Under the pieces are notes generated by a model, which was not told where the DNA came from, searched no databases, and worked only from the letters and a program-made list of their open reading frames with translations. A program made the translations under genes and the position numbers. Positions 11,701 to 51,840 of a stretch of 64,000 bases of DNA are shown piece after piece; position 1 is the stretch's first letter, and every line of letters starts with the position of its first letter. Source of the DNA: Trichoplax adhaerens (lineage: Eukaryota > Animalia > Placozoa); contig NW_002060943.1 of the NCBI RefSeq assembly GCF_000150275.1, forward strand, positions 186,001-250,000. The letters run 5' to 3'.

Positions 11701-14700
11701 TTTAGGTCCTTCCGCAATTGCTGGATCTCATGGATGATATCGCAAATCCTCGTGTACAAGCTCACGCATGTGCTGCGCTCTATCATTTTTGTGACGATTG
11801 CCCATCCCATATCCTGAAAATTTATCTGGAGCCAATAGCTATCAAGTTAAAAGCATTATTACAATCAAAGCTTCAGGAGGTATCTGATTTATTGATCTAC
11901 GGTATATAAATGTTCTGTCAACTTAAATTTTCCCAGTACATAACGTTATACGTATCTTTAATTATGTAGCTAATGCAGCAAGGTACTAAAAATGTCCTGG
12001 AACAAGCGATTACGGCAATATCTACCGTAGCACAGAGAGCTGAAGGGAACTTTTTACCTTACTATGATCACTTCATGCCTAGTCTAAAGTTCATAATACA
12101 AAGTGCTACTACTCCTGAATATCGTTTACTGCGTGGTAAAACTATTGAATGTGTCAGCTTTATTGGCTTAGCTGTTGGTACCGATAAGGTACATTCTTGT
12201 TCTCAAATTTAAACAAACTAATACACCTTCTCACTACCTTTATCATTTCAAATATCAAAATTCTAAATAATTTACAAATTTTTGAATTGTTATGTAGTTC
12301 CTGTATGATGCCAATGATGTTATGCAGTTACTTCTCAAAACACAAACTGGTGATATCGAAATGACAGATGATGATCCACAGGTTAGTAATATAGTATTGG
12401 CCTTGCTCGGATAATCGCGTTTTTCATAAATTTTAAGTATTTTATTCAAACCCATAATTAAAATAGGTTTCATATATGATGACGGCTTGGGCTCGAATTT
12501 GCAAGATACTTGGAAAGCAATTTGTCCAGTACCTACCAGTTGTAATGCCGCCTTTAATAAAAGCTGCTTCTGCCAAGCCTGAAGTTGCAATATTTGATGG
12601 TTAGTTGAATATGCGTAAAACCGTTCAGTCTTAGTGATGCTTGGAATTTACAATTACTATATCAATTATTAATTACAGAAGACGATGAAAAAGCTCAAGA
12701 CGACGGATGGGAATTTGTAAAAATTGGGGAGCAGGTACACAATTTAATAACTTTTAATATTACATCTGATATCAACTATTCAAAATTTTAATTTTATTAT
12801 TACCGATTAATTTAGCAAAAGTTTGGAATAAAAACCGCTGGCCTCGATGATAAGGGAACAGCCTGTCAGATGTTGGTATGCTATGCCAAAGAATTAAAAG
12901 ATGGATTTGTTGATTACGTGGAAGAGGTTAGTAGCATGTAACAATGTAGATACTATGCATAAATTAGCACTATAGTAAAATAAAATTGACCGCTCTCCTT
13001 GATAGGTTACAAAGATAATGGTCCCGCTTATGAAATTTTACCTGCATGAAGATATCCTAATACTATTTCTTATAAAACTGATTTATTATTATAATAAATG
13101 TAATCTTCTACACTAATTTGATCCTTAACAAAGGACACGTGTTAGAGGTGCAGCTATAGAATCATTACCTTACCTCATTGAAAGCGCTAAATTTAAAGGT
13201 ACTTGATTACGATTACTTAAAGGATCCTTATAATTATTTTCAATGAGAGCTAGAAATAATGCTTAAACTACCACATTACAGGTGGTCTTGTAACGCAAAT
13301 ATGGCAGTTTGTGTTGGAAGAGATTTTTCAGGCTATTAAAATGGAACCTGAACCTGAAATGCTAGCCAATGTATTAGACTCTTTTGCTAAGGTTGGTATA
13401 GGAACTGTTATAGTCTAGATTATATATAATTATAAATATCGTGACGCGAGCTATCATTAATGCATCTATCTTTCACTTCGTTAGTGTATCGAATCATTAG
13501 GAAAAGGATGTGTAAACGGCAAAGATATGGAAAAGCTGACAGAGATTATACATGAACAAATCAAGAAATTGCAGACTAATGCTCAATTGCGACAAGGTAG
13601 ACTTTATTGATGATGTCTTCGAATTGCCTTCAAGTTATGCATTTTAATCTTTATTCATCACAGAATTACGCGGCGATGAGGACTATGATGAAGAAGTTGA
13701 AGAAAATCTTCAAGAAGAGGTAGCAGATAATATTCAAAATTAGAGTAAATTCAAGGCGGTACTAAATAATAATATTTCTAATGTTATTTGTATTTGATAG
13801 AACGAATGTGACTCGGAAGTACTTGGAAAGGTGAACGATTACATTACTTTTAAATTATTCCTATCAAAGGATTAAAATTTCTTAACAAGTATTTTCTTTG
13901 CTGTACTAGGTTACAGATCTAATTCATGTACTGTTTAAAACTTACGGTCAAGAATTCTTACCAGTTTTCGACAAGTTATTGCCGGACTTTGCTGGTTTAA
14001 TTGTACGTATGCATTTGTTAGGATTTTGGCAGTTACGTTAAGATCAGCTAAATCAGACCATAAAATTGTAAATCTAAATTCTGATTTACTTCCCTAGACG
14101 CCTGATCGAAACTGGCAGGAGAGGCAGTGGGCGATTTGCGCATTTGATGACTTGATTGAATATACTGGAAATGTAGAAGCCTTTANNNNNNNNNNNNNNN
14201 NNNNNNNNNNNNNNNNNNNNNNNNNNNNNNNNNNNGTATATTGCGTAATTACAGTTTAATTATTCCTATACATAGCTTGACTGACCTTGTACTTTAATAA
14301 TTATTATCAATTAGGCCTCTTTTGCTTATCACGGATATTTCTTGGAACAGTATATTAATAGTATTACTGATGTTCATTGTGAAATTCGACAGGTAAAAGC
14401 CAATTTAGTGTATTTACATTTTTTCAGCTTTATTTTAATAAATTATTTGATATTTTATGTAGTCGGCGTCATATGGCTGCGGCATTATCGCACAATTTGG
14501 AGGGGAAGAATATTCTAAGTTTATACCAGGTCTACTTAAATTTGTATTTCATGCTGATTATTCTAATCAATTTAATTTCAAGCTACGACTAAATATATGC
14601 CGCATGGTGACTCATTTTAAAGTTGTCTATAAATAAATTATTCATGTTTTTCCCTTAGAATTTGTTCCACCTTTACTTAAAGTTATTACCGATGCATCAG

Positions 14701-20607: not shown

Positions 20608-23600
20608 ATGGGATCGTCTTGCGCCAAAGGCAATCGCAATAATCAAGCCGATAAAGTCAAAGATGAAGAATCCATGTCCTCAAGTAGGACATCGCGAGCG
20701 CCTGCAGGGTAATGTTGATAGTCTAATTAAAAAAATTGCTTGTTTTTTTTCATCATCGTTCATTCGTTCAACGATCGACCACTTCATGCTATCCTATATC
20801 CATCAATCAGTCAAGATGACACAAAACAATCGTAGCTCTTGTCGTTCATCATCTTACATCACTTGTAGGCCATGTTATCACTTCAAGCCCCCTAGTTAGG
20901 CTATCATCGTTCAAGACCCAATTCTCTCCATCATGATGGCTAGCATGATGAGACGGATGCGATGTGGCAACGGATTCAATCATCTGATGTCGACTTGCAA
21001 TATAAGCCATCCTTGTTCTTGACTACACTCATCATCCACTTATTTTTCATCAATCGATCGCTATGCTATTCATGCAAATAACTCTATCCAACGAAAAAAA
21101 GCAAGAACCGGGCCCTACTTTTTAATCGACGCCAATCCATCCCATAGGCAGACAATCCTTTGTACTATATACTATATCGATACAGGTGATGATGATGAAA
21201 AACAATCCTAACCCTGGACAATTTGCACTCTTGATACCCAACACCAACCTCTACAACGGTAGACGAGGCTACTTCCATATCGATCCCAACTGTACGATCG
21301 ATGCGGATCTACTGCCAAATTGAACTCTTATTTTCAACCGGCAATCTTTCCTACTACAGCCATCCCTTGTGGATGCTTTTGCAAATCCCATTGACTAGAA
21401 GTTGATTCTATGCATATGATCGGTCTATTAGACGACTTTCCTAATCGCAATAGGCAATAATACGATAATGCCAATCAACAAGGCTTGAAACTCCATCGAA
21501 ACACCGCAATCGCTTGATCAATTCATCACAGCGTGAATAGACGATGTCAACATCGTTTATACTAACTCGTCTTGATGGATGGCGTTTCTATCGGCCATCG
21601 CAAATAGGCGCTCCACGTATTCTACTGACTATCCTATCGCACACCGACGTCAATCGATATCCATGCCCAAAATAAATTCAACTACATACCCATGCAATCA
21701 ATCCTGACTTGGATACATAATATCATCATCATGTCGACAACACAAGCTGCACTGTCATGACTAGCCTAGAATGGAACATCATTGAATTTCCAACATGCCC
21801 GGAAAAGAGTTGAATTGAACAATAGTAATCGATCCTAGTAGTACGGACTTGGATTCCTATTTCAACTCATTCTAATTGGCCTAGTATACCAAATTAAAAT
21901 GGATCCCAGCAAAAGCATAGGTCACAAGCAATTTGCGGATGGCAGGCGCAGAGAATCCACTCGCAATCCATCCTATAGAACTTGACTTCATCTCATGACA
22001 ACAGCATTCATGTTACTCTTCTCAATCATGTCATGCGAGTAGTAAGTAAAAGACGAGATTAAAAATCAAAAATTTAACGCCTTACTAACTCATTGGGGAC
22101 AATACCCTGAATATCAATTTGCAATGGAGTTGTTCAACAACGATTGAACCAGAAACTCTTTGCAATCGTTGTTGAATACTGCCTTGCTACTCTCAATCAT
22201 GTCGTGCGAGTGGTAAGTAAAAGACGAGATTAAAAATCAAAAATTCAACGCCTTACTAACTCATTGGGGACAATACCCTGAATATCAATTTGCAATGGAG
22301 TTGTTCAACAACGATTGAACCAGAAACTCTTTGCAATCGTTGTTGAATACTGCCTTGCTACACGACACCACCTACTTCAACTGGGCTACCAACCATTCCT
22401 ACAAGGATAACAAGCGATAGTGGAAAAATCATTTGCCAATACTGTAGTCAACCCAAAGTGTCTCTCCTATCTACCGGATAGAAAGGATTATGAATTCATC
22501 CAAAATAATCATAATGGACTACGGTAGCGTCACGATTGATTTCAATATTCACATGCAAGCAATTGCCACCTTTTTAATACTGCTTGTCTGTCATATCCGC
22601 TACCTTTATACAGTATTTTGTAATCGTAAATTGTCACTGATTAGACTTCCATTAAAGTCTCCTTCAAGTTGCCATTATTTCCAATTTTTTTCCCATCCTC
22701 CATGAAAAAAAAGTCATCCAATCACCTTGTTGACTCTATGCAATACTCTACTACGCAAGAAACGTCCCCACCGACCACGATACTGTACGTAGTGCCAACT
22801 TGGAAAAATGACATTAGTTCTCTAATTGAAGAAGGAAAAAGTAAATTGTTGCAAAATCACTCATTTACACGATCTATCCTTACTGTCTTGATGACGATGA
22901 TCGAAAAGTGATTGGGCCCCCCAAAATGTCTTCTTTTTTTTTTTCCATCAAAAATGATTGTATGGCTAATACGAAGATGCTGTAGTGTGATTGCATCCTT
23001 CTCGTCATACTGACTACAGCACCCTTTTGGCTAGCTAGAAAGTTGTATCAATCTTTCCCCATTTTTGATTAATTCAATTCATTAATATTACTTTTAACAA
23101 GCCTCAATTTATTTCTTCAAACTGACTTCTATCCACTTTGACGGTGGATCACCACCAATATTCTAACTTTCTCAACATGCAAACTTGAAATGTTAAAGAA
23201 GGAGCGTCTGGATGGACGCGTTGCGAGGGGTAATTAATCCATTCCAATTCAACTCTACATTTATAATGAAGTCGATAATTAAATCGATCATCATCTTAAT
23301 CACAGTAAACTTTGGATGTTAAAAATTATGCCAGGCATCTTGTCTTTTTCCCGCTATGGTTACCAGGCTTTACCGTCCGATTTTAATGTCAATCCTCACT
23401 GAAAACCATCGGCTTACTCATCCCTATTGCATATGCTAATATGGCGTATTCTACTTCTTGTCATATTCATTTGCTTTTCCATGATACAATTTGCCCTCGA
23501 TCGATGCATTTATTTCCCCTCTATATCCAGACAGGAACCCAACTAGGATTGATACACTGCTGTTGAAAGCCTACTCATGACATTGCCTATCAGCGATCGT

Positions 23601-26600
23601 TTTTCCTCCTATGCATTAGCGTAGAAGGAATAATTTGCTTCTCTCGACACTGGCTATCAATCAGCATAGCCGGCTTGGGAGATAGGAATGTATCATCACT
23701 GTCGTCGTTCTCATCTCTGCACTTACAGTAGTTCAAATCGACTTGATTCATGCATTCTCTGACCAATTCACCATAAGCAACGTAGTATCATTCAATCAAG
23801 ATGGAAAATGTATCCTCAATTCCATTTCGATAGTATTCTATCAGTGTTAAACGACACCATACGACATGATGTCGTGTTGGCCTTGATCAACCTACGATGG
23901 AGTACTATTCAATTTGTTGTTGTTCAAGCAGGCGAATATTCTCAGTCCATTTCGCCGCCGTGATCAACACATGATGTAGACCTATCCTCGTATTGAATTT
24001 AGTGGTCAAGCCGGCGACTATTCTTAGTCGAATTGGCCGCCGTGATCAACATAGGATGGAGATGTCTTGAACTTGTTAGTCAAGCAGATGAATATTCTGT
24101 GTCCTGAACTTGTTAGTCAAGCACGCGAATATTTTATGCCGGAAACTTGTTAGTTAAGCAGGCGAATATTGTATGTCCGATTGACTGCGATCAACACCAA
24201 TTTGTTAGTCAAGCAGGCGAATTGTAGATGCCTTTGAAATTGGTTTTTCAAGCAGTCTACGTCTGCCTAAAATACTCCTAATTTATTTTCATGGAGAAGG
24301 AATAAACTAGTCTTCAATGTCCAACACCATGACAACGAAGTGTCCAATCGATAGGTCGAGACGGTGTCGTTTATACTTTTGAAACACTTGCCTTAATTCA
24401 TGTACTCATCAGGCAAACTAGTCATGGCCGCCAGCGTTTTTCCTCCGTTTTAATGCCTATAAAAATGGCCACTACATCATTCATTGTAATGTTCACTAGA
24501 ACCATCTTATCCCTTTTTTTTCCTGACTCAACCATAGCCATAAGAGTCGTCGTTGGACATTTCGCCATGGTACGCATATATCAATATGAGGATTTATTCA
24601 AGAAAGATCTTTGCGGCTGTAAAAACTCCCCATACAGCTACAAATTTTCCTTTAGCAATCTCCCTATCGTCATGATAACGGATTGACCATGATCGACTAG
24701 TGTATTCTACCTTGTTATTGGGGGGGAAATGAATTCTATACTTGAAATTCTGATACAAAATGTCGCCATAGGCTATCAAACGGAGCGATCAATGTCGTCG
24801 CGCTCGATCGTATTGGAGAGCCATGGAGTAGTACTGTAGTAGTAGTAATTTTAGATCAAGTTTGAGAAGAAATGGAGGATAGGAATACACTGTACTATCG
24901 TCCGTCATTTGAGAGAAATTTGTCAAGTCTGGATACCAATACGATCAGTCAATACGCCATCAGCAAGCGATATTATTTTAGGCCGGTAAATAAACAGATC
25001 CATTTCAGAATGTTTGCTACATCTTGATTTAATAAGAATCTTATCCAACTGCTAAATCTACTTGAAGAATAGCCATGCCAACAACTTGATCCATTTTATA
25101 TTCCTGTACTACCTTTTGATTGCCCCCATAGAAATGATTCATTGACTAGGACGTCGTGATATTCGCTGCAAATTATCCCTCGTCTCATCATCAATCTGTT
25201 ACGATTATCTTGTTGATAGACGACCTCAGTAATCTGATTGCCCTCCCATCAGTTCCATTGGAATCCATTTCTTGATGATATGGACACATGCTGTCAACGT
25301 TGTAACAACGGAATCGGTGACGATAGGAGAAATGGTTTGCCTGCAGTAAAGTAAAACTCCTTGATCGCCAGTTTCTTGATACTAGATTGATTAGACTAAA
25401 AACTCTCCATCACCATCCCCCTGTTGGATCCATAGACAAATGGACATGACTTCGTTTATCCAACTGGAAGTCGTCATCAATTCTTTTTACCCCTGAAGTT
25501 ATGCTTGGATGCAGTTTCAATGAGATCCAATTCGATTATTCCCCAAGCATGATCTATAGTAGATGATTGCATTCTGCCCTACTTATCGTTCCATAAAATA
25601 GGAAAAATTGCAGCGAACGCTATCGCAAAATGATGACTTTAAAAACTTTGTTTTATGCTGTTGAAATTATGATCGTTATTCATTCTACTCTCATCAAAGA
25701 ATCAGAAAAATGGATAGGAGAAACCCTTGATCTGCACAGTATATTCCATTCGGGAAAGGACAAACTACCCGACAATTTAAAAAGCTATACAGTATTTCCT
25801 TGAATGAGCCGAGCCGGCTTCCATACTTTTAGTATTCCTGTACTATAAAAATTAGAATAGTCACCGTCAAGAACGTATTTTAGTAGGCAAGACGATATCG
25901 TGTCAAGTATTTGGCTGGCCTTCATAGGCGTTCACATAGGACTAATCATGAAAAATGAAGATAGAATAGCTGTAGTAATGTAGTGGTGACATAATATTGT
26001 AAGCTAGAAGAAATATGGAAACATGTCTCGTCATTATCCATCAAGAAGCTAAAAATAGTGCGATCCTATACACTGCCTACGTTCAGAATACCCCCCCCCC
26101 CCCCCATCAAAGCTGGTATACTTGTCAATGGAAAGACAGATATTGCAATCATGGACGATGATCGATACCCTGTCATCATTTCATTGACTTTCTAGCTAAT
26201 TTGAGGTCTTTCCACTGAAGTAGTGCCTAGCAATTGATCGATGTAAAACCACCAATGGAGCTACTTCAATAGAATGAGTCAACCATGGATTCTATCTTGC
26301 TTGCCAGATCATATTTCAATGATTGCAAGCTAACCAACGAATACTCGTATTGATTCCTTGGCCATTTCTACCCATTAGCAAATTGGAAATTTCGTTACCC
26401 ACGTATTCACAGTATCCACCGTTGATACGTAGGTTAACAGAATACCCGTAGAAAAGTTGGGCTAGGATGAACTAGTTGCATCGATTACTATACTTAGATT
26501 AAAAGTGAAATAATACCAATCTCCGACATCAAACCAATTTGTCGATGATGGACAACATCCGATGGTATAGCCTTTCAAGGTAGATGCTGCCTCGATCGAC

Positions 26601-29600
26601 TTTGAAAAGCAATGTCAAATATCAGCCATGATCGCAAAAACTTTGATCGACCTAGACAAGATTATAGATCATGACAACATCCAATCGTATAGCCTTTCAA
26701 GGTAGATACTATCTCAATCTACTTTGAAAAGCAATATCAAACATCAGTCATGATCATGAAAGCTTTCATCGACCCGTACAAGGAGAGTTCAGAAATGGAC
26801 ATGATGGGAATCGTGAGTGAAATAGAGTGGTGATAGAATAGGGGATAGACTTAATAATGGTAATAACTTTAGTCTTAATGAAAATAATATACCTGTACCA
26901 ACGCAATTAAATAATCACATTAGAAAACCTCGGGCTATAACGTCATGGATTATAAAGAGTCGATAGAGAAAAAGAAGATATTCTAACCCTAACCCCCCCC
27001 CCCCTCCATTTTTAAAAGCGGTTGTCGTTCTTATTGATATTCGTACAGTAATTTTACAGATTAGAGTAAAAATAGCGTTCAGTCAATGATAGATTGTCAA
27101 TGGTCTGTACACTTTATCACCAAGACGTGAATAACATGTACTCAATATTTTGTTATGGTGAGAATTCATTTTCTAATCAAGATTGATGGATACAGTCCTT
27201 ATCCTTTACCTATATCGGACTAGCCATCAAAATGGCGCCTTGAGAAAGTATCGCCAGTCAACGATAGAAATGTCTTTTCATATTGAACTTAATTCTACTA
27301 CGTCTATAGCGACTGGATTGAATATTTTTATAACTTGATTCGTCTGCTCAATCGGTCATTATTGCAGTAGGAGAGAAGTAGATACAGTATGATTGCTTGA
27401 ATCGGTAGCAATAGTTCAACCATTTTATAACCCTTGCAATTGTATCAACAACTTCTACTTTATTGGCTGCAATACAACCTTTGACCGCTTGAAAATGGCC
27501 ATTAAATAGATATTGCTGTACCACATGCAAACTATTGATAAATGTTTTCTAATTGACCCAAAACAATGTGACTTAATTGATCATCATCAAATAGATTGAA
27601 TTCTTGACAATCCACTATAAAAATAGACTTTACTTTTTCCTAACGCACAATACTTACCCATGCATCTAATTGGATTGTAGAAGTTGGAAAAAAAATGCAG
27701 CTTCTACACTTATTCCTTTTTCATTTCGTCTACAATAGCAGTTATGTCATTACGGTTGATTTCAATACCATCACTTAAAGAACGACAAAAGATGGCGATG
27801 ATAAATGATTGCTTTATTGAACAACTCAATGTCTATTTTAATCAGTAGAGAAAAACGCCTAGAATAGGATTGTATTGATCATCACTAGAGTATGTTAGCT
27901 AAGCATAGAATCAATCTCGAAGGGTAAAAATGAACATAGTTGACATGGCATGATCGATGAAAGCTGCAACCTATTATCTGATGGTATTCCTAATGATTTC
28001 TTGCTAGTTTCCTTGATCAACTATCCCATTCCGATAGACTATTCCATCAGCCAATTCATTAGCAATAGAAATTGAGTCAGAAATGTTGCTATAGCATTCT
28101 TTTTCGGAAGAATTATTTTATACTTTGTTCATTTTGACAAATGATTCATCATCTACCTCGCCCCAAATGAAAGTACAGCCATGATTAATAGGACACCGTA
28201 ATCGTTCAACTTTTGACAAAGACTACTCCAATCTTCCTCATTGAGTAGTCCATAACCTTGACAAGGATTTCATTGACTGTATTACAATTTTGAACAATCA
28301 ATATCGGAGATGACGTTAACCTTGTCAACATGGACAATCTATTCTCCATATCCAAATTTAATCATCATGATAGACTAGAGGAACGATGTAACCAAGTTGA
28401 CAGCAGGAACAGGAGTATCAAGGTTATGGATACTTTTACAAATGGATAGGAATGACAATGATAATTTATTATCATAACGTTATTTTGGTTGAAGTATTTT
28501 TCCTTAATCATCTCTATCCATAATCTATCTATTATGACCTTGATAGAAAAAAAAATAGTACTATTGTACGTCCATACAATTTCGATCATTCTCTACTTTG
28601 GTCTACAAGTGAGTAGAATAGACTAGTTCATTATGGATCCATTTTAAAAATGGATTCTTTTTCCCCCTACCATAGTTATCCATAGAGCAAGAATCGCTAA
28701 TAATATATTCTATAGCGTTGATGATCATTGTCATTGCAACAACTAAACTCGTCGTCCCCCCCCCCCCATCATATCAAATTATTTTACTATAGCGATAGGA
28801 TGATATAGAAAAATTTCATGTTAGAGTGGCGAGAACCTTGGGTATACAGTATAGTAACTTAGACTTTTAAGTGAATATTAAAATATCTGGTAATACACTT
28901 GTACCTGTTATAACTTATTCGTCTTGACCAAGCTTGCTACATGTTATTAGCAATCCGTCGTATTGATTGTCATCACTATTGACATAGACACTAAATTAAT
29001 GAAAGACGGGATGGGATGGCTTGTAGAATAGTAATTCATCAAGCTACTGTACTAGCAAAAAATCGAAAATTTTTTTTTCCATACAATCGATCAGAGCAAC
29101 CACTTTTATAGTCAAATTTGAAAATTTTCCCTTCGTCATCAGTAGATGATTGTGGTCAAGCTAAGCTTTATAGGATATCTATCGACAGCATAGTACTTAT
29201 TTCGATTAATGTGTCCAAGCATAAATCGGTATGCAATCGATTGATTTGTAATGGAGACCGACCCAATCTTTTCCAATCCATTTGGTAGGGATAATATAGA
29301 AATAATATCCATTGGAAAACACCCTGCCTTCATTGCACAACCGTTGAAAACTTCTTAGGCATGTCAAATCCATTGCAATAGAATGGCTATCAGTAATACA
29401 TCATCGATATACTGTAGTAGTATTCTATTTGCATAGAATATCCACCAATAGCGTCCATGATGGACATATTAAAATATTAATGACACTATAAGTTAGTACT
29501 GGACCGAATTCCAATGATCAATAAATAGAAAGCTTAATAACAAATAACACTTGAACAAACGTAAAATTAAGACGATTCCATTGCGCGATGACAAGGATAT

Positions 29601-32600
29601 CATTGACAGACAACAGCTATTGTATCCGCCATTGCTGTTATTGACTCTAGTTAAAATAGGAATCAATCAATCATTTTTTAAAGCCGATCGCTAGAGTAAT
29701 TACTTTTGCAATAAATTTCAAACGTCAACATTTTGGATCTATCTTGAACTACAATCAATCCTCTGACTATAGATTATAATAAATATTTTTATTCATCAAG
29801 AGAGTATCACGAATAATCGTTCTATCTTGATGCATTTAAATGCTATTTCTACTTTTACATTCAAAGAAATGAGTCCATTATCCATCTGATTCTATTGTCT
29901 TCAAACTGACATTCATAACTATTTAAATCAATAAAAATGTTCAATTGACATTGACTACCTTAAAGTAGTTATAATATCTTGACTAGAATAGCAGATAGAA
30001 TCGAAGCTAATTTTTTTTTTCACTTTCGATATCAAAGCTGTAACTTGTTGTATTAAACTAAATTAGTTAGGATAAGCGTGAAATAAAATAAGAAAAGCGA
30101 TTTTACAAAGTAGTGGTAGTGTAATATTCTCTCCCAATATCTATACCTAGCATCGATATTGGAACATGAAGATACTTTCATCAACTTGGGTAACAAATTC
30201 ATTTTACAGTACAGCGGTATTCCAATGTACTACATCGACATGCTTACAGTCGATAGGGAGAATAAATCAACTAAATTGAATAGAAATGAACAGTTTTGTG
30301 TAGAATGTTCAATTGGCATAGGACTACCGTAAAGTAGTCATATCTTGACTAGAATAGCAGATAGAATAGAAGCTAATTTTTTTTTCACTTACGATATCAA
30401 AGCTAGAACTTATTCTATTAAATTAAATTAGTTAGGATAAGCGTGAAATGAGATTAGAAAAGCGATTTTACAAAGTAGTGGTAGTGTAATATTCTCTCCC
30501 AATATCTATACCTAGCATCGATATTGGAACATGAAGATACTTTCATCAACTTGGGTAACAAATTCATTTTACAGTACAGCGGTATTCCAATGTACTACAT
30601 CGACATGCTTACAGTCGATAGGGAGAATAAATCAACAAAATTGAATAGAAATGAACAGTTTTGTGTAGAATGTTCAATTGGCATAGGACTACCGTAAAGT
30701 AGTCATATCTTGACTAGAATAGCAGATAGAATAGAAGCTAATTTTTTTTTCACTTACGATATCAAAGCTAGAACTTATTCTATTAAATTAAATTAGTTAG
30801 GATAAGCGTGAAATGAGATTAGAAAAGCGATTTTACAAAGTAGTGGTAGTGTAATATTCTCTCCAATATCTATACCTAGCATCGATATTGGAACATGAAG
30901 ATACTTTCATCAACTTGGGTAACAAATTCATTTTACAGTACAGCGGTATTCCAATGTATTACATCGACATGCTTACAGTCGATAGGGAGAATAAATCAAC
31001 TAAATTGAATAGAAATGAACAGTTTTGTGTAGGTTGAGCATTTCAAAATGAAGTGATACTAGTACAACACATACATAACTTGTTAAGCTACGTATACCGA
31101 AAGAGTAAATTTGGCCTACTGTATTTCTTAATATACCTAGAATGAATTGGCTATGAAGGTAAAAAAACGAAATCAATTTTATTTTATTTTTTTTTTTTTG
31201 CTGTCTATTCTAAACTACCAAATTTCACCTAGTTAATACAATAGACCAAAAGGTACAATTTTTTACAGATCACAAACCATACAAAGAAAGGGGTAGCCAA
31301 CGATAAATGAATTCTAGGTACCAAAAAAAATGAAATAACTCTCTAAACTAGTGCTCAATGGTAGTAGTCGGTCAAAGAACGACAATTAATAATTGAATAT
31401 CAAACTAAATATTTTGGATTTGAAGGCATCATCACTCAAATTTAAGCCAACCTTGACAGTTGATAACTACCATTTTTAACCATTGACTATATATCAAAGA
31501 ATGAAATAGATTAGTAACTGCGATGTATTCATTTTTAGCTTAAAACAACCCTCCTACTGTATTTAACACTTATGGACTTGACAGTGGATAACTATCATTT
31601 TATTTTTCAGCATTTATTATATTCAAGAATGAAACATTAATAGCTGTAAGCTATGCAGGCATGGATCAATTTTAACTTTAAAACAACCTCTTCTTTCTGA
31701 TTTAAACACCTATTCACTGGATCATTGATAACTATTACTTCATGCTTGAGCATCCATTCTATTGAAGAATGAAACATATTAATAACTGTAAACTAAAGAG
31801 ATATGTATTCATTTTTATTTTAAAATGACTCTCGTCTTTGTAATTGAAATACAAGCGTACTTTTGATCAATTCAAAGATATTGTGAAGACATAGATTGAA
31901 TTTAAAATAACTATCTTACTACTGCTTAATAGAAGTCATTCTCCTATGAAGTAATTGGGGTGGAACGATAATACATAAAAAAACGCTTGACTATACAAAA
32001 TAACCCCGTCCTCAGAAATAGAAATGAGTAGTTGTATCAATAGAAGTATGATCATGTATTGATTGATTTAATTTTTAAGGCCTAGCTCTCATTATTCTCT
32101 GTTCCTTATTTACTTACAATATGTATGTATCATCAAATATAGATAAAGCGATAAACGGTAGATATTGTATGTGATAAGGTCATAAATAGAACTAGCAGAA
32201 GATTAGGGTGCGATTAATTTGCACTTAAAAATTCATCAATTGCATACACTATACATCTACCCTTAATACCTTTTGAGGACTATCAATCACCGTAGATAAG
32301 AACAAATTGAGATTATTATCGATGGAAAATATAAACTAGTAATGGACTTGATAAATTTTTTAATAAAGATGTACAGTACAGTATATTCTCCTCTAGCATA
32401 ATAATTTTATAGTTTATATTATTGTAAACGGAAAATATAAAACTAGTGATTCACTTGACAAATTTCCTCTAACGATACATCTTAGACGTTAATACATTGA
32501 TTTTATATCGTTATGTTATACTTGAAAATAACCAATTTTTTAATCATTTTGCACTACACTGTTAAGCTAATATTGTTTCTATAATTAATATTAGACGAAA

Positions 32601-35600
32601 TGGTACCCGAAGACCTACGATAATTCCATTCGAGCCTCCAGAACTATCGATACAAAATAGTGAAAAGCAGCTAAAACCATGCAATCCAGGAGTATTTATA
32701 CTACATATGGTCAACCGACAGATATATCTTAGCTACAAGTATGTAAAAAGTGAATTATATAGTTATACAATTCTATTTCATCAGCTATAATGTTAAATTG
32801 ACGTTATTAGCTATACTTTAACTCAATTAATAATTCAACCAGTATGATGTAACAATGTTGCTTATAATGTCAATATAGATCAGCTGAAAGGGAAATTAGC
32901 CATGCGCCAATATCGGTCACCGCAGAAGGTTATAACCTGAACAAGAAAAATTATACCGATATTAAAATGCTAATAGAATTTCATAGCAAACACCCTATCA
33001 ATGGCACCTTACTATCGATACAGGTAAATTGAAATAACTTGAAAAGTTAACATATAAACTGTATATTTAGCCATAGCTGTTACCTCATAATTTCGTTTTT
33101 ATAATGTACGATATATATGTATACTTAATTGATACGAAATATAGCAACAACCTGAATGCAACATTCCTGTTTGGAACGCTCCTGACATCAACCCTCAAGC
33201 AAAGAGTAAGCATCATCATCAATTAATGATTGGTAACGCGTTTGATGATATTCGCAAGAATGGACGCATCATTAAAATTTTAGTCAGTGCATCTCACACT
33301 GGTTAGTAATATGAATAAATCATTTTTAGTACAATTGTAGTTTTTATCGATCATCGGTAGATGCATTTATTTCGTTATTTTAATACTTGTTCAATCAATC
33401 ATACATACGTATATTCATTGTAGACTTCAATCAAGAGAGACAGATGTTATTAGAACGAGTCTTTCCGAAAATACGACTACATTGTTTTGAGCATGGATAT
33501 GATTTTCAAGCTATTGATGTAACCTGGGGTATTAAAAGCCTTATATTAGATGAGCACAATATTACTCGATTGACGTTAGATTTGCTACGTTACTGCCAAG
33601 AGCAATCCGTTGGGCCTAACTTTATCGTAAGTCATACAATTATGTTATAAAAGATTATTAAAAAAAATTACTGCTGTGTAAAACGTTTTGACATTTTAAA
33701 ATCATAAATATGAAACGTATTCGATATTTTTAGACCTTAGTGGGTGACAGATATGGTTATCGTCCACTGCCAACTAAAATTTTCGATAAAGAATTTAAGC
33801 AGATGTTAGCAGCTATTGAAAATCAGGAGCATAGGAAATTTTTTACCGAGTGGTTTGTGTTAGATGAAAATTCTGTTCCTGCGACGCATGTATTACAGCC
33901 AATTAGTTCAGTATACCGTGATTTTAACTCAACAAGTAGCAATGCACGCAAGGCTGCCGAGGGAAATTGGCAGAAAGCATTCAATAGATTGCAAGATATT
34001 TTATATTCAAGTCTGAAAGGAATATCTGACGAAAAAGCAAGACCGAAATATTTGCTATCTGGTCAGTATTTCAATATATATAGAGAGAGAGATAATGACG
34101 TACGTCTTGCTCTCCTTTTACAATTATAGACTTACATAATTGGTATTATCTTACATAAATGACCATCCGTTAGGTCCATTAACAAATAATCTTTTTCTCA
34201 TTTCCACAGAAACCCATATGATCGCTCAGGAAGCCATATTGCGATCAGATAATCCTAACTTTAATTGTATCTTAATGCGTAGAAATATTACAGATATTAA
34301 AAAATTCGTTGGCAATGATTCTAAAATAAGTGATTACTTAGATGTTAACCCTGAATCTGGCGTTATCGATAGCCACGCTCAAGATTTGTTGTCAACACTT
34401 ATTGATAACTACATTCCTTCTAGACTACACCATACCAATATATTGAGTTATGATGTAAAGTGGAAAGCTAATGTTGGAATCGACAAGAACAAATCAACAG
34501 ATCATTCCAAGTATATGAATGGACTATGTACTGACGTTACGGAAAAGTTAACATCCTTAGTTGATCAAGCGATCCAAACGCATTCTTCGCTAAACTTTAA
34601 TGATGATGATCTCTATGAAGAAGTTAATCACCATACTGCGCTGTGTTTAACAAAATTTAATGAATTTCATGGATGCGAAGATCTCTTACAAGCTATCGAA
34701 CGTTATGTACGAAGTAATAGCAAGCAACCTCTTGTATTATTAGGTCCCTCAGGATGTGGCAAAACATCATTAATATCTGCAGCTACTAGAGAATGCAAAA
34801 AATGGCTAGGATCATCTGGCTGTGTTGTTGTACGCTATTGCGGTACATCACCTGAATCTGGTAATATAAGATTACTGCTAAGAAGCGTATGTCAACAATT
34901 TCGAAAAATTTATAACGGTGACCCAGCTACTACACCAGAGGTAAACCTATCAACATAACTCTTTTATTCTATCATAATTTACAACGTATCACTTGAGTAG
35001 TCCGTAATTATAACTTCCTTAACTATGCAGACTTATAAAGAACTAAGGGACGACCTAATGAAACGGTTAAAAATGGCTACCACCTTTTTTCCGCAAGTTC
35101 TTATAATTGATGGTTTAGATCAATTATCAGATGATGATAATGCACACGAAATACAATGGTTACCGAAGACATTACCGGAGTACGTTAAAGTTATCCTATC
35201 AGTGAGATCAGACTCATCTAGTCCTGCTTTACGAAGTTTAAGGGTAAATTTCATTCACTGTGATTTATGTAATTATTCTTGCTCAAAATTTTTCTATTCA
35301 AAAAATTTTCCACAATCTTGATGTTTTAATAAATATACTCTTGATGTTGACCGTTTACACAGACAATATACGCAAGTGAATCAAACTTTCTAGAAGTACC
35401 CCCTATGTCAGAATCTGAAGCCAGCATCGTTTTTGATATATGGATGAATACCAAAGCACGACGCCAAGTTGGTAGTGATCAAATAAATGCGATTATGCGT
35501 ACTTTCTCCAAATGTCCTAAACCACTTTTTCTCAAGTTAATTTACGAAAGATCATGTAAATGGCATTCATATTCTAAAGGTGACGTAACATTTTTAGCCT

Positions 35601-37934
35601 CAACCTTAGAAGAAATTGTTGAACAACATTTCGAAACTTTAGAACAAAAACATGGAAAAGTTTTAGTTAGCTCTGCTTACGGATATATTACAGCCTCACG
35701 CTATGGTTTAACAGAGTCTGAAATAGAAGATCTCTTATCATCAGATAACGACGTTATTACCGCTATCTATGATAAAAATGTCCCGACAGTTGCACGTATT
35801 CCACCGATCACATGGATCCGATTACGAGCTGATGCTGGTAGCTACTTAAGCTTGTATACCGCCAATCGATGTCGTGTACTCAAATGGTTTCATCGATTTA
35901 TTGATGAATGCGCCGCAAGGCGATATCTATCTTCAGAACAACAACGTAAAAATAATTACACTGCCCTAAGTGACTATTTTCGCGGTACTTGGAGTAATAA
36001 TCGGAAAAAGCCTTGTAAGAATACAAGTGTGGACAGGTTATTACCTCCTCAACCACTAATATATAGCACCAAGGAAGGAAATAGGCCAATATACAATTTC
36101 CGTAAATTGGCTGAACTACCTTATCACTTACTTCGTGCAGGTAACAACTATCGTAAAAATGTACCATAATATAGTGTATGAAACGTTTAACAAAGAATTT
36201 TTGTTCTCTTTTTAAAAATACTACTAAAATAATATTGTTAGCATACCACTCACATGCACTACCGATTAATTATGGTATATCCCAAAAAGTAAATCATTCA
36301 TTTTATCAACTTATACTTTCCACATAGGTGAAATTGACAAAATGAAGGAAGAAACACTTTGTAATTATGAATTTATTTTGACCAAAGCTTGTGCAATGTC
36401 AGTGGCACAAGTTTTAGACGACATCAATCTTGCCCTTCAAAGTCCAGGAAGTGTCGGCGACAAAGAATTACAACTTCTACATGATGCTCTAGTAATATCT
36501 ATGAATGCCCTCAAAATGGACCCTACTCAGCTTGCATCTCAATTAATTGGTCGAATTGGTCGAAGTGTTGATAAAAAATTAACACATTTAAATGCTCTCT
36601 TACAACAGGCAATGAAGCCATCAATCCCTAATTTAATTCCACGTCGAGAATGCTTAACTAGGCCTGGTAGTGAAAAACCAAACCTAGCTAGCATCGATAT
36701 GGCAAGTCTTAATATGGAAAAATTATATATGAATAATTCAAACGTCAATGTTACAACTACTTCAAAGAAACGTAAAACTTTTACAGTATGGAATGTTAAC
36801 AGTTGCCTTCCAGTCCGCTCATTTCGAAATATTACCGTTGATCAAATTGTTATCATGAAAAGCAACAAAATAGCTGTTTACTTCGATCGTCGAATTGTTA
36901 TCATTGATTTAGATTCCGGTGAAGTATTAAACAAGATCAAGGGATTTCACTATCAGCCCAAATTTCTTGATAATGAACACCTAGTAACTCTTTCTCGTGG
37001 TAGAAAATTTGTCAAGATCGTTAATGCTATATCGGGTGACTCTATTGCATCTTTAAAGGCAGATCAGAAAAATTGTATCGATCGTTTAATGGTTAGTAGT
37101 GCAGGTAGTTTAGCTTTATGTATTTACAAGACCGAGGAAAATATCATCGGATTTATTTCTTGGGACCTTAAAACAAAGCAACAATTACCTAAATTTGATA
37201 TCAAAGATTATATCTTTAAAGAGCATATTATAAGATATTCGTCTCTAAGTGATGATGGCGAAATATTTGTTGCCGCTTCTGATGGAACACGTAAATCAGC
37301 AGAAAAGCAAGCTGCCGTAGTATTTGACGTAAAAAGCGGCAAAGTTAACTTTGGCCTATTGTATGAATCATCTCAAGCCAGAGGATTGCCAATTGGTTTT
37401 ACATGTTTTACCATCTCGAAAGATATTATATTATCTGGTTGCAAAGATAGTAGCCTTCGTTGCTGGAATAGAATTAACGGTAAAGTAATTCACTCATTAA
37501 AGGGCCATAGTAGGCCAGTTCAACAGATTCGAGTAGATGAAGATAGCTACCGTGCTATCACGGTTGCAAACCATCGTGAAGATAACAGTATCAGACTTTG
37601 GGATGTCAGACAAGGTTTACCTCTAAGTTGTTTTATACCAGATGAAATTCCTAAATGTGTTGGTATCACAAACTGTGGTTCATGGATTGTATTCTCCGTT
37701 GAAAAAGCCGAGAATTTAGGAGTACTTGGCCTCTTTTCGAATAAATCCGAGCCTGGTACTGTTAATGAAGAACGTGCTATCGATGATGCCTTCACTGAAA
37801 TCGATCTTGAACCTTGTTGTACAGCGCCGCATGATCCATTTGATGGCGATGACGATGTTGATGAATATGAATTTGATGCAGTCACAATCGAAACCGACAC
37901 CTCAACAGACCCTATGACCAGTGATGACTTATAA
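20608..37934 (+). CDS. NACHT/STAND NTPase with WD40 repeats (NWD1/NWD2-like), with predicted N-terminal myristoylation motif and SH2-like domain; ~1468 aa
   Basis: Ten phase-compatible GT-AG exons: 20608-20708, 32595-32738, 32879-33023, 33145-33301, 33424-33626, 33734-34061, 34210-34940, 35031-35243, 35363-36140 and 36328-37934 (4407 nt, open). Motifs: DUF4062-like IKILVSASHTDFNQER...DVTWG...GDRYGYRP, Walker A GPSGCGKT, Walker B VLIIDGLD, GLTESEIEDLLS, RKLAELPYHL, and WD40 segments (LKGHSRPV...SIRLWD). The exons from 33145 onward are solid; the link to exon 1 is inferred. Confidence 0.85.
22014..22361. repeat. Tandem duplication, 2 x ~171 bp, each copy with a 14-bp perfect inverted repeat
   Basis: Near-identical copies start at about 22014 and 22188. 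TTCAACAACGATTG...CAATCGTTGTTGAA is at 22133-22176 and 22304-22347. Confidence 0.93.
23915..24256. repeat. Short degenerate repeat cluster, core TTGTTAGTCAAGCAGGCGAATATT, ~7 copies
   Basis: Copies lie near 23919, 24000, 24073, 24110, 24146, 24202 and 24241. The central three have a ~37-bp period. Confidence 0.8.
26551..26782. repeat. Tandem duplication, 2 x ~122 bp
   Basis: gacaacatcc...tatagcctttcaaggtagat...ctttgaaaagcaat occurs at 26551 and 26673. Confidence 0.85.
29936..31032. repeat. Tandem repeat, 3 x ~365 bp, nearly identical
   Basis: Unit starts (aatgttcaattg) are at about 29936, 30304 and 30669. Copies 2 and 3 differ at only a few positions. Confidence 0.96.
31450..31830. repeat. 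Degenerate tandem repeat, ~125 bp, ~3 copies
   Basis: Recurring gataacta...aagaatgaaa...taaaacaac blocks. Confidence 0.7.
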
Positions 37935-50451: not shown

Positions 50452-51840
50452 NNNNNNNNNNNNNNNNNNNNNNNNNNNNNNNNNNNNNNNNNNNNNNNNN
50501 NNNNNNNNNNNNNNNNNNNNNNNNNNNNNNNNNNNNNNNNNNNNNNNNNNNNNNNNNNNNNNNNNNNNNNNNNNNNNNNNNNNNNNNNNNNNNNNNNNNN
50601 NNNNNNNNNNNNNNNNNNNNNNNNNNNNNNNNNNNNNNNNNNNNATCAACAGGGCAAAGAAAAAGTATAACAGAGCTAATGTACTATATTGTGCATGAAT
50701 TTATTTAAAAAGATCCATAAGCATAATCTAGACAGTTGTAGCATCGTCAGACGCGTAAAAATCACACAACGCATGCATTCACATTCTAAATTTATCTCCA
50801 GTTAGTAGCTAGTACATATCCGTGGGCTGTACTCCTAGTAAACAGCTTGATATATTTAAAACGCAATATTTAGGACTTTTTAAATGATCGTTTATTGGAA
50901 TATTATCAGATTATAGTTTACATATTTAATAAAGGCAAGGTACAGACCGCATAAAATGAGGTATATCTTTAATTGACATCTATCTTACTTCATGACCAGC
51001 TATACCTACATTTTTTTATGGATAGGGTCACATTATTAATAGGATTGGGTAACGTTCAATGTAGATATTGCACAAGCTATAGCTTCTACTCAATACTAAT
51101 CTATCTTCTTTAATTGCTAGATGATATTATATGACATCTTTTCATCATATGGGCTCAAGGTTAATTCTGCCAATTATTTGCAACTTTAATAAAGCCCACT
51201 TGGGTAATATAATACTCCTTCCTGTATACACGTCCTAAAAAAGAAATAAAAAAGTTTATCAATAAATACGCTATATTAACTATATATACAATAATCCTGA
51301 CCGTAGTTATTGTTATTGTTAGGCAAGTATAGCTAATAATATATTATTATTAACGACTAGAATACTGCTGGGTCTTGTGTATTATAATATTTTTAGAACG
51401 ACTAGATTAAACTGCATCTAATAGTAACTCGCGACAAGTAGAGTACGCGCGTAAACGGATGCTCGACATATGGACTGCAAGAGGACCTACCTACCATTCA
51501 TTCTAATGTAGCGTAAAGTAACATTTAAAATCTATTTCAATCCATAAGCAAAAAAAGCAAAATTGTTGGATCTACTTTAATTTCATCCTTGTTCAATCTT
51601 TAATCCCATTAGTATTCTTACTATACTGAAACATTGTATCTGGTATCAGGAACATCAAGAAAATATAAAAATAAAAGCAACTCAAATTTGATCCTAATAG
51701 CTGATATCAATTACAGTATCTATCGTGTAAACTCATACAGCAGAAAGAAAGCTAAATTCTATTTTGAACACAAAACTAACATTTGTATTCGATCAACTAC
51801 AGTAGTACAAATCTTTACCAATAATTTGGCCGGTATAGGC

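Follow-up and report, generated by a model that had tools for sequence, protein, structure and literature searches.

We analysed a 64,000-nucleotide stretch of the genome of the placozoan Trichoplax adhaerens (positions 186,001 to 250,000 of the forward strand of contig NW_002060943.1, RefSeq assembly GCF_000150275.1). This stretch is called the window below, and all positions are counted from its first letter. Two small exons on the plus strand, at 32595-32738 (exon 1) and 32879-33023 (exon 2), lie directly ahead of a gene with the parts of an NWD1-type STAND protein, and together they encode a peptide with the features of an SH2 domain. We think that the gene probably codes for a STAND ATPase of the NWD1 type to which a degenerate domain derived from SH2 has been added at the N terminus, with both splicing and fold predicted from the DNA sequence.

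The two SH2-like exons are open throughout, are in frame with each other and have AG/GT borders, and this observation is confirmed. Exon 1 is bordered by TATTAG|A at 32595 and AA|GTATGT at 32738/9, and exon 2 by ATATAG|A at 32879 and CAG|GTAAAT at 33023/4; the acceptor of the following exon, exon 3, is ATATAG|C at 33145. Exon 1 starts in phase 2 and encodes a linker and the N-terminal half of the SH2-like domain, with a proposed alphaA, betaB (GVFILH) and betaC (IYLSY). Intron 1 (32739-32878, 140 nt) is in phase 2 and lies inside the Lys codon after LSY. Exon 2 encodes the C-terminal half, with betaD (ISHAPIS), the motif GYNL, alphaB (YTDIKMLIEFH) and HPING. Intron 2 (33024-33144, 121 nt) is in phase 0 and the intron between exons 3 and 4 is in phase 1. 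Exon 3 (33145-33301) encodes a linker and the first strand of a DUF4062-like domain, as judged from its translation, G+C content and codon score, and it ends in IIKILVSASHTG. From exons 1 and 2 the frame runs on through exon 3 into the DUF4062-like exon 4 (33424-33626), which starts with DFNQERQMLLERVFPKIRLHC and contains DFNQERQML. An earlier note on this DNA had proposed that exons outside the list of open reading frames (ORFs) splice in frame into the DUF4062-like exon. The translation, borders and phases bear this out: translation of 32596-32738 and 32880-33023, joined by a codon AA|A (Lys), gives the peptide in that note. The absence of exons 1 and 2 from the ORF list is explained by the lack of an in-frame start codon in either.

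The base composition of the region changes exactly at the proposed splice sites. The G+C contents of exons 1 to 4 are 0.389, 0.379, 0.401 and 0.364, in contrast to 0.236, 0.231 and 0.246 for the three introns and 0.234 for the DNA upstream. The genome as a whole (105.6 Mb in 1414 contigs) is AT-rich with short GT-AG introns, and the contrast in composition is, of the intrinsic evidence, the best indication of real exons. As a null, we used both strands of about 20 kb of likely non-coding DNA and collected segments of the form AG|open frame|GT with an open frame of at least 140 nt. There were 78 such segments. A G+C content of at least 0.37 was reached by four, all within a stretch that possibly holds real exons itself. 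Codon usage said less, and the scoring had low power (the true exon 4 reached just the 4% tail): 8.5% of the open null windows scored at least as high as exon 2, a weak signal, and exon 3 had the best codon score among the small exons.

Three methods assigned exon 2 to the C-terminal half of SH2 domains, a conclusion that is supported at the level of sequence comparison. All SH2 searches and models were made exon by exon. First, exon 2 had a single Pfam match, to SH2_2 (PF14633, the tandem SH2 of Spt6), with an E-value of 1.4e-3 and 18.5 bits, below the cut-off of 27. The match covers model positions 176-209 of 211, where the second, non-canonical SH2 of that family ends. When all six frames of the genome were scanned with SH2_2, just the three exons of Spt6 ranked above this locus, and a bona fide SH2 gene came next. 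Second, we built a hidden Markov model (HMM) from the SH2 domains of the same genome, using 10 single-exon domains and, from split Trichoplax genes, eight first halves and six second halves; the exons of the window were excluded. The exon-2 ORF ranked first with 15.8 bits (E = 3.6e-4 among 565 ORFs, E = 1.5e-3 among 2366 window ORFs) and aligned to positions 47-87, the whole second half (EREISHAPISVTA-EGYNLNKK-NYTDIKMLIEFHSKHPING). As controls, a left-out STAT-like SH2 half scored 16.7 bits and the C-terminal SH2 (C-SH2) of Spt6 scored 7.9 bits. The score of exon 2 therefore falls within what genuine, divergent SH2 halves reach. Third, a feature search of the ESM Atlas with exon 2 led to SH2 clusters (0.92; 188/256 shared features; 20/30 hits SH2; recognition 2992).

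The breadth of the model mattered. With an HMM restricted to 10 Src-like SH2 domains, the exons ranked just 29th and 44th among the 565 window ORFs (548 result rows), and for this reason the broader own-genome HMM was needed. Comparison of exon 2 by hhalign to an alignment of 10 Src-like SH2 domains gave nothing. A model of exon 2 alone made with AlphaFold 2 (AF2) had a pLDDT of 69 and contained a hairpin and a helix at residues 22-37, where betaE/betaF and alphaB are expected; Foldseek found no match with the AF2 model of this half. Half-domains are poor objects for structure tests. A two-chain structure prediction of the exon peptides gave 0.19 against a mark of 0.34, which counts neither for nor against.

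The position of intron 1 is that of the intron in most split SH2 genes of Trichoplax. In eight of the 10 split genes, a phase-2 intron interrupts the Arg codon that follows LS(V/L/I/F), as AG|GT or CG|GT, after betaC. Exon 1 ends with IYLSY followed by a Lys codon that is cut after its second base (AA|GTATGT), so site and phase are those of the eight genes. This match is a line of evidence independent of the sequence scores. Given the intron match together with the signal of exon 2, descent from a two-exon SH2 domain is the most economical reading, and we consider it very likely that exons 1 and 2 arose in this way. The common position, seen on other contigs at G000 loci L015, L017-L021, L023 and L024, is also a useful marker for divergent SH2 exons.

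Exon 1 fits the N-terminal half in alignments. Against 10 Trichoplax SH2 domains, hhalign placed it in the expected register, with PELSIQNSEKQLKP--CNPGVFIL on alphaA-betaB (P = 0.0027), and mafft --addfragments put exons 1 and 2 on the N-terminal and C-terminal halves, respectively, of an SH2 alignment. The own-genome HMM found no other SH2 first-half exon in the window. The earlier claim that the peptide follows the SH2 pattern throughout was upheld in part: it stands for exon 2 (SH2_2, own-genome HMM and ESM Atlas) and for the intron site, and exon 1 by itself gave no significant signal.

Several results weigh against the SH2-STAND reading, and those that concern the two exons are gathered here. 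The canonical Pfam SH2 model (PF00017), which the earlier note had put forward as a check with HMMER, gave no match at E <= 10 on either exon, and the locus was not among the 48 hits of a genome-wide PF00017 scan. Exon 1 alone had no Pfam match and no usable match in the ESM Atlas (recognition 1316), scored 1.8 bits with the own-genome HMM (rank 44 of 565), and had a match to the Trichoplax Spt6 C-SH2 by BLASTP that was weak (E = 0.37). The AF2 model of exon 1 alone had a helix where the betaB and betaC strands are expected. The codon-usage score of exon 1 was uninformative, with 42.6% of the open null windows scoring at least as high. For exon 2, BLASTP against the Spt6 C-SH2 gave nothing, a search for homologous proteins with its open frame gave no candidate, and phmmer against the PDB sequences gave nothing for either exon. 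A search of the Trichoplax genome with either exon peptide returned the locus itself and no paralogous copy. Lastly, no ATG, GTG or TTG lies in frame in exon 1 before 32707.

These points could be taken to mean that exons 1 and 2 are either 5' untranslated sequence or open frames that arose by chance, that their likeness to SH2 is accidental, and that the gene encodes a plain NWD1-like STAND protein, for which the in-frame ATG at 33226 could serve as the start. Such a reading would agree with the missing in-frame start codon in exons 1 and 2, with the out-of-frame ATG at 32600, with the lack of significant similarity or coding score in exon 1, and with the silence of the canonical SH2 model. 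However, it would leave to chance that three different methods call exon 2 SH2, that the site and phase of intron 1 match those of SH2 genes, and that open frames of 74 and 54 codons with compatible phases occur in DNA of 31% G+C. We consider it very unlikely.

If the exons are real, they are likely to be joined to the STAND gene. The fusion is indicated by the junction between exons 2 and 3, which is in frame (phase 0), by the rise in G+C at the AG before 33145, and by the frame that stays open from there on. The alternative is that exons 1 and 2 are a real SH2-derived coding unit of a separate upstream transcript that ends at a TGA (…SIQVN*), and that the NWD1-like gene starts at ATG 33226. 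Unspliced read-through does stop three codons after 33023 (QVN*), and a start at 33226 would give MIGNAFDDIRKNGRIIKILVSAS..., a typical short lead into DUF4062, as seen in homologues with a DUF4062 that starts at residues 4-40. The relatives also tell against a fusion: the 150 closest NWD1-like proteins all lack both an SH2 signal and similarity to exons 1-3, and six of them with long N-termini have no Pfam domain before DUF4062. On the other hand, two separate genes would be just ~110-190 nt apart, and the upstream one would still need a start exon of its own. The change in G+C from 0.23 to 0.40 falls exactly at AG 33143-33144, as at a splice acceptor, and the frame is open from this acceptor to ATG 33226, with the junction in frame. 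We regard two separate genes as unlikely.

No SH2-NACHT combination was found in the literature that we searched. Kamm et al. 2019 (PMC6321704) listed three NACHT-containing genes for Trichoplax sp. H2; among these, TrispH2_006365 combines NACHT, WD40 and IPR025139 (DUF4062) and may be the H2 counterpart of the gene described here. No SH2 is given there for the NACHT genes, a further point against the fusion; the effector domains are CARD, death-like and DD, and the placozoan NOD-like proteins carry WD40 or TPR repeats, not LRR (PMC6321704).

The phosphotyrosine pocket of the SH2-like domain is largely gone. In the alignments, the Trp of betaA is replaced by Pro, the Arg of alphaA2 by Ile (LSIQ), the Arg of betaB5 by His (FILHMV), the Ser of betaB7 by Val and the basic residue of betaD6 by Pro, and the phosphate-binding BC loop is ~3 residues shorter. 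The His of betaD4 remains, as do the hydrophobic core positions. The earlier note was thus correct in that His stands in place of the phosphotyrosine-binding Arg (FILH) and that the alphaA2 Arg is missing. Because the pocket residues are replaced, classical phosphotyrosine binding is unlikely. That note had offered two signalling roles, and with the pocket residues gone, wiring to a tyrosine-kinase-type module appears less likely and an SH2 domain that acts independently of phosphotyrosine would fit better.

The same losses raise the question of whether the module, while translated, is a decaying SH2 relic without a binding function of its own. The loss of four to five pocket residues, the shortened BC loop and the strong divergence of the N-terminal half are what one would expect of a relic. 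Conversely, the module retains its structural core positions and is free of stops and frameshifts. A His at betaB5 is reportedly also found in working human SH2 domains (TYK2, RIN2). A relic is, in our opinion, unlikely.

The gene into which the SH2-like exons are predicted to splice extends from ~32.6 to ~37.9 kb on the plus strand, and its NWD1-type STAND parts are supported by sequence searches. After the DUF4062-like (TIR-like) core in exon 4 come exon 5 (33734-34061; TLVGDRYGYRPLP..., splice sites read from the sequence), with the rest of the DUF4062-like region and part of the pre-NACHT region, and exon 6 (34210-34958, 3' border approximate), with the pre-NACHT region and the P-loop GPSGCGKT, assigned from homologues and Pfam. 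Two exons at 35025-36169 (borders approximate) carry the rest of NACHT, including the Walker B motif LIIDGLD, and an NWD1-type winged helix, and the last exon (36342-37934) carries the WD40 beta-propeller and the stop codon; these assignments are from Pfam.

The matches of the individual parts differ in strength. HTH_NWD1 (PF25469) scored 67.7 bits against a cut-off of 27, the best locus genome-wide for this family, and WD40 (PF00400) scored 36.2 bits against a cut-off of 27, along with many propeller families. The two NACHT pieces, with both Walker motifs (A, GPSGCGKT) present, scored 14.4 bits and, for the one at 35025-36169, 22.9 bits; both stay under the cut-off of 26.7 owing to the division of the domain among several exons. 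The Pfam DUF4062 model had no direct match on exon 4 or the gene. By phmmer, exon 4 matched the DUF4062 stretch of NWD1-like proteins with E-values of 1e-15 to 1e-18, and in two of these proteins (P0119 and P0075) Pfam places DUF4062 there. The NWD1-type setting of DUF4062-like domain, NACHT and WD40 described in the earlier note was recovered, with its P-loop, HTH_NWD1 and WD40.

The STAND gene has relatives within and beyond this genome. A HMMER scan with the 272-aa open frame of the pre-NACHT region and P-loop returned 2071 homologues, of which 613 reach E <= 1e-10, with NWD1-like proteins at E-values down to 2e-45. The closest (P0001, 247 aa, from a 4.3-kb Logan contig) is an exon-sized ORF that is 91% identical to exon 6, which points to an orthologue of the NACHT gene in another placozoan lineage; the other homologues are NWD1-like and at most 41% identical. 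Further HTH_NWD1/DUF4062 loci lie in the Trichoplax genome at C1384:76302, at C1414:6353113, 6375635 and 6387480, and at C1410:5246217 and in a cluster at 7.56-7.64 Mb. Several further NWD1-like loci have uninterrupted open frames of 900-1600 aa, which suggests a small family of NWD1-like genes that is partly intronless.

At least one 5' coding exon is still missing, because exon 1 has no in-frame start. A candidate for a remote first exon lies at 20608-20708 on the plus strand (MGSSC...; MGSSCAKGNRNN…), where a phase-2 donor (AGG|GTAATG) is compatible with the phase of exon 1. Of the ATG exons found upstream, it alone combines a phase-2 GTAATG donor with an exon-like G+C content (0.50). It would have a start resembling a myristoylation/palmitoylation signal, and it lies in a G+C-rich stretch; the link to exon 1 is unproven and implies an intron of 11.9 kb. 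Two nearer candidates, at 32024-32055 and 32121-32170, were set aside for their intron-like G+C content. An SH3 exon upstream, as in a Src-like SH3-SH2 unit, had no match in the window. Pfam gave no match on 10 open frames at 21-28 kb, and a 300-nt coding-score scan of the same region gave no clear gene on either strand.

Some further features of the window are recorded here as separate observations. Within exon 1, the out-of-frame ATG at 32600 opens a 7-codon upstream ORF (MVPEDLR*, 32600-32623) that would precede any start in exon 1. From 20800 to 28000, the G+C content is 0.36-0.43 with a strongly negative GC skew, and there are no long open frames. About three tandem copies of a unit of ~365 bp lie at 30120-31034, each with the same open frame (…LEHEDTFINLGNKFILQYSGIPMYYIDMLTVDRENKSTKLNRNEQFCVECS…), and two 57-aa ORFs among them are identical. 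Runs of N, which mark assembly gaps, are at 14186-14235 and 50452-50644.

Based on these results, we propose that a true two-exon SH2 domain was placed ahead of a STAND gene in the placozoan lineage. The predicted protein would begin with a 5' exon and continue with the SH2-like domain (exons 1 and 2), a linker, the TIR-like DUF4062, NACHT, the NWD1-type winged helix and the WD40 propeller. By analogy with models for Apaf-1 and TEP1/NWD1, the WD40 propeller would sense a signal, and NACHT would then oligomerise and bring the N-terminal modules together. The SH2-like domain might serve in this assembly as a phosphotyrosine-independent docking or regulatory module rather than as a classical reader of phosphotyrosine. 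The exon structure, reading frame, base composition, exon-2 SH2 signal, intron match and residue replacements can be read from the data themselves; that the exons are spliced in the animal, how the complete domain folds and what it does are inferred.

The neighbouring domain gives this proposal some of its context. DUF4062 has been described as a TIR-like NADase domain, with activity demonstrated for bacterial Swarozyc and human TEP1, and in NWD1, NWD2 and TEP1 it occupies the position of the CARD of Apaf-1 (bioRxiv 10.64898/2026.05.01.722283). In the same work, purified NWD1, NWD2 and NPHP3 showed no DUF4062 NADase activity. If the Trichoplax gene is transcribed and its product folds, it would be a natural reuse of the SH2 scaffold without the phosphotyrosine pocket, beside a TIR-like NADase domain. 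It might also offer a way into the wiring of NWD1-type proteins, for which neither trigger nor output is known.

A bolder version of the proposal, which we believe is quite unlikely, couples the STAND/NLR-type switch to phospho-signalling. The SH2-type domain would still recognise a phosphorylated ligand, by means of a non-canonical pocket, perhaps in a protein anchored to the membrane by the MGSSC start, and kinase activity would gate, or be gated by, a TIR-like NADase oligomer. The SH2 of Spt6 has a non-canonical pocket of this kind and reads pSer, pThr and pTyr. Such coupling would link a STAND/NLR-type protein directly to phospho-signalling in an early-branching animal.

Among known systems, NWD1 and NWD2 are the nearest to the Trichoplax gene as a whole. 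They share the order DUF4062-like domain, P-loop NACHT, HTH_NWD1 and WD40, and the closest full-length proteins are 33-38% identical over the pre-NACHT/P-loop exon. The Trichoplax gene differs in the absence of a Pfam DUF4062 match and in ~100 extra N-terminal residues with SH2 features. An SH2-derived module at the N terminus of a STAND protein is absent from the literature searched, from the inventory of placozoan NLRs and from the 150 closest NWD1-like proteins. The case also illustrates that small exons without start codons can hide domains from both ORF tracks and Pfam.

The SH2-like module shares a core pattern with canonical SH2 domains (PF00017; Src, Abl, Grb2). It has AE..L, G.F(L/I)(V/L), Y.LS(V/Y), the His of betaD4, G.Y.(I/L), F/Y..(L/I)..L(V/I)..(Y/H) and the tail ..P(L/I), along with the two-exon structure and the phase-2 intron after betaC. 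It differs in that PF00017 does not match, five pocket or marker residues are replaced and the BC loop is ~3 residues shorter. The C-terminal SH2 of Spt6 (PF14633) is the sole Pfam family that matches, and we read the Trichoplax Spt6 C-SH2 as lacking an Arg at betaB5; in contrast to that domain, the module is single rather than tandem, its score is below the cut-off (18.5 versus 27 bits) and its protein context is unrelated. The TYK2/RIN2-type atypical SH2 domains and the JAK FERM-SH2 unit share the His in place of the Arg of betaB5. They have different partner domains, and no sequence relationship to the module was shown. In the atypical SH2 domains with His at betaB5 (TYK2, RIN2) and in the JAK FERM-SH2 unit, binding is independent of phosphotyrosine.

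In its overall layout the predicted protein resembles Apaf-1 and the NLRs, with three parts: an N-terminal effector, a STAND NTPase and a repeat sensor. The make-up of STAND and NLR-type proteins changes by exchange of the N-terminal module, for example a CARD, PYD, TIR or death domain. The N-terminal domains reported for placozoans are CARD, death-like and DD, whereas the Trichoplax gene described here would combine an SH2-like with a TIR-like module.

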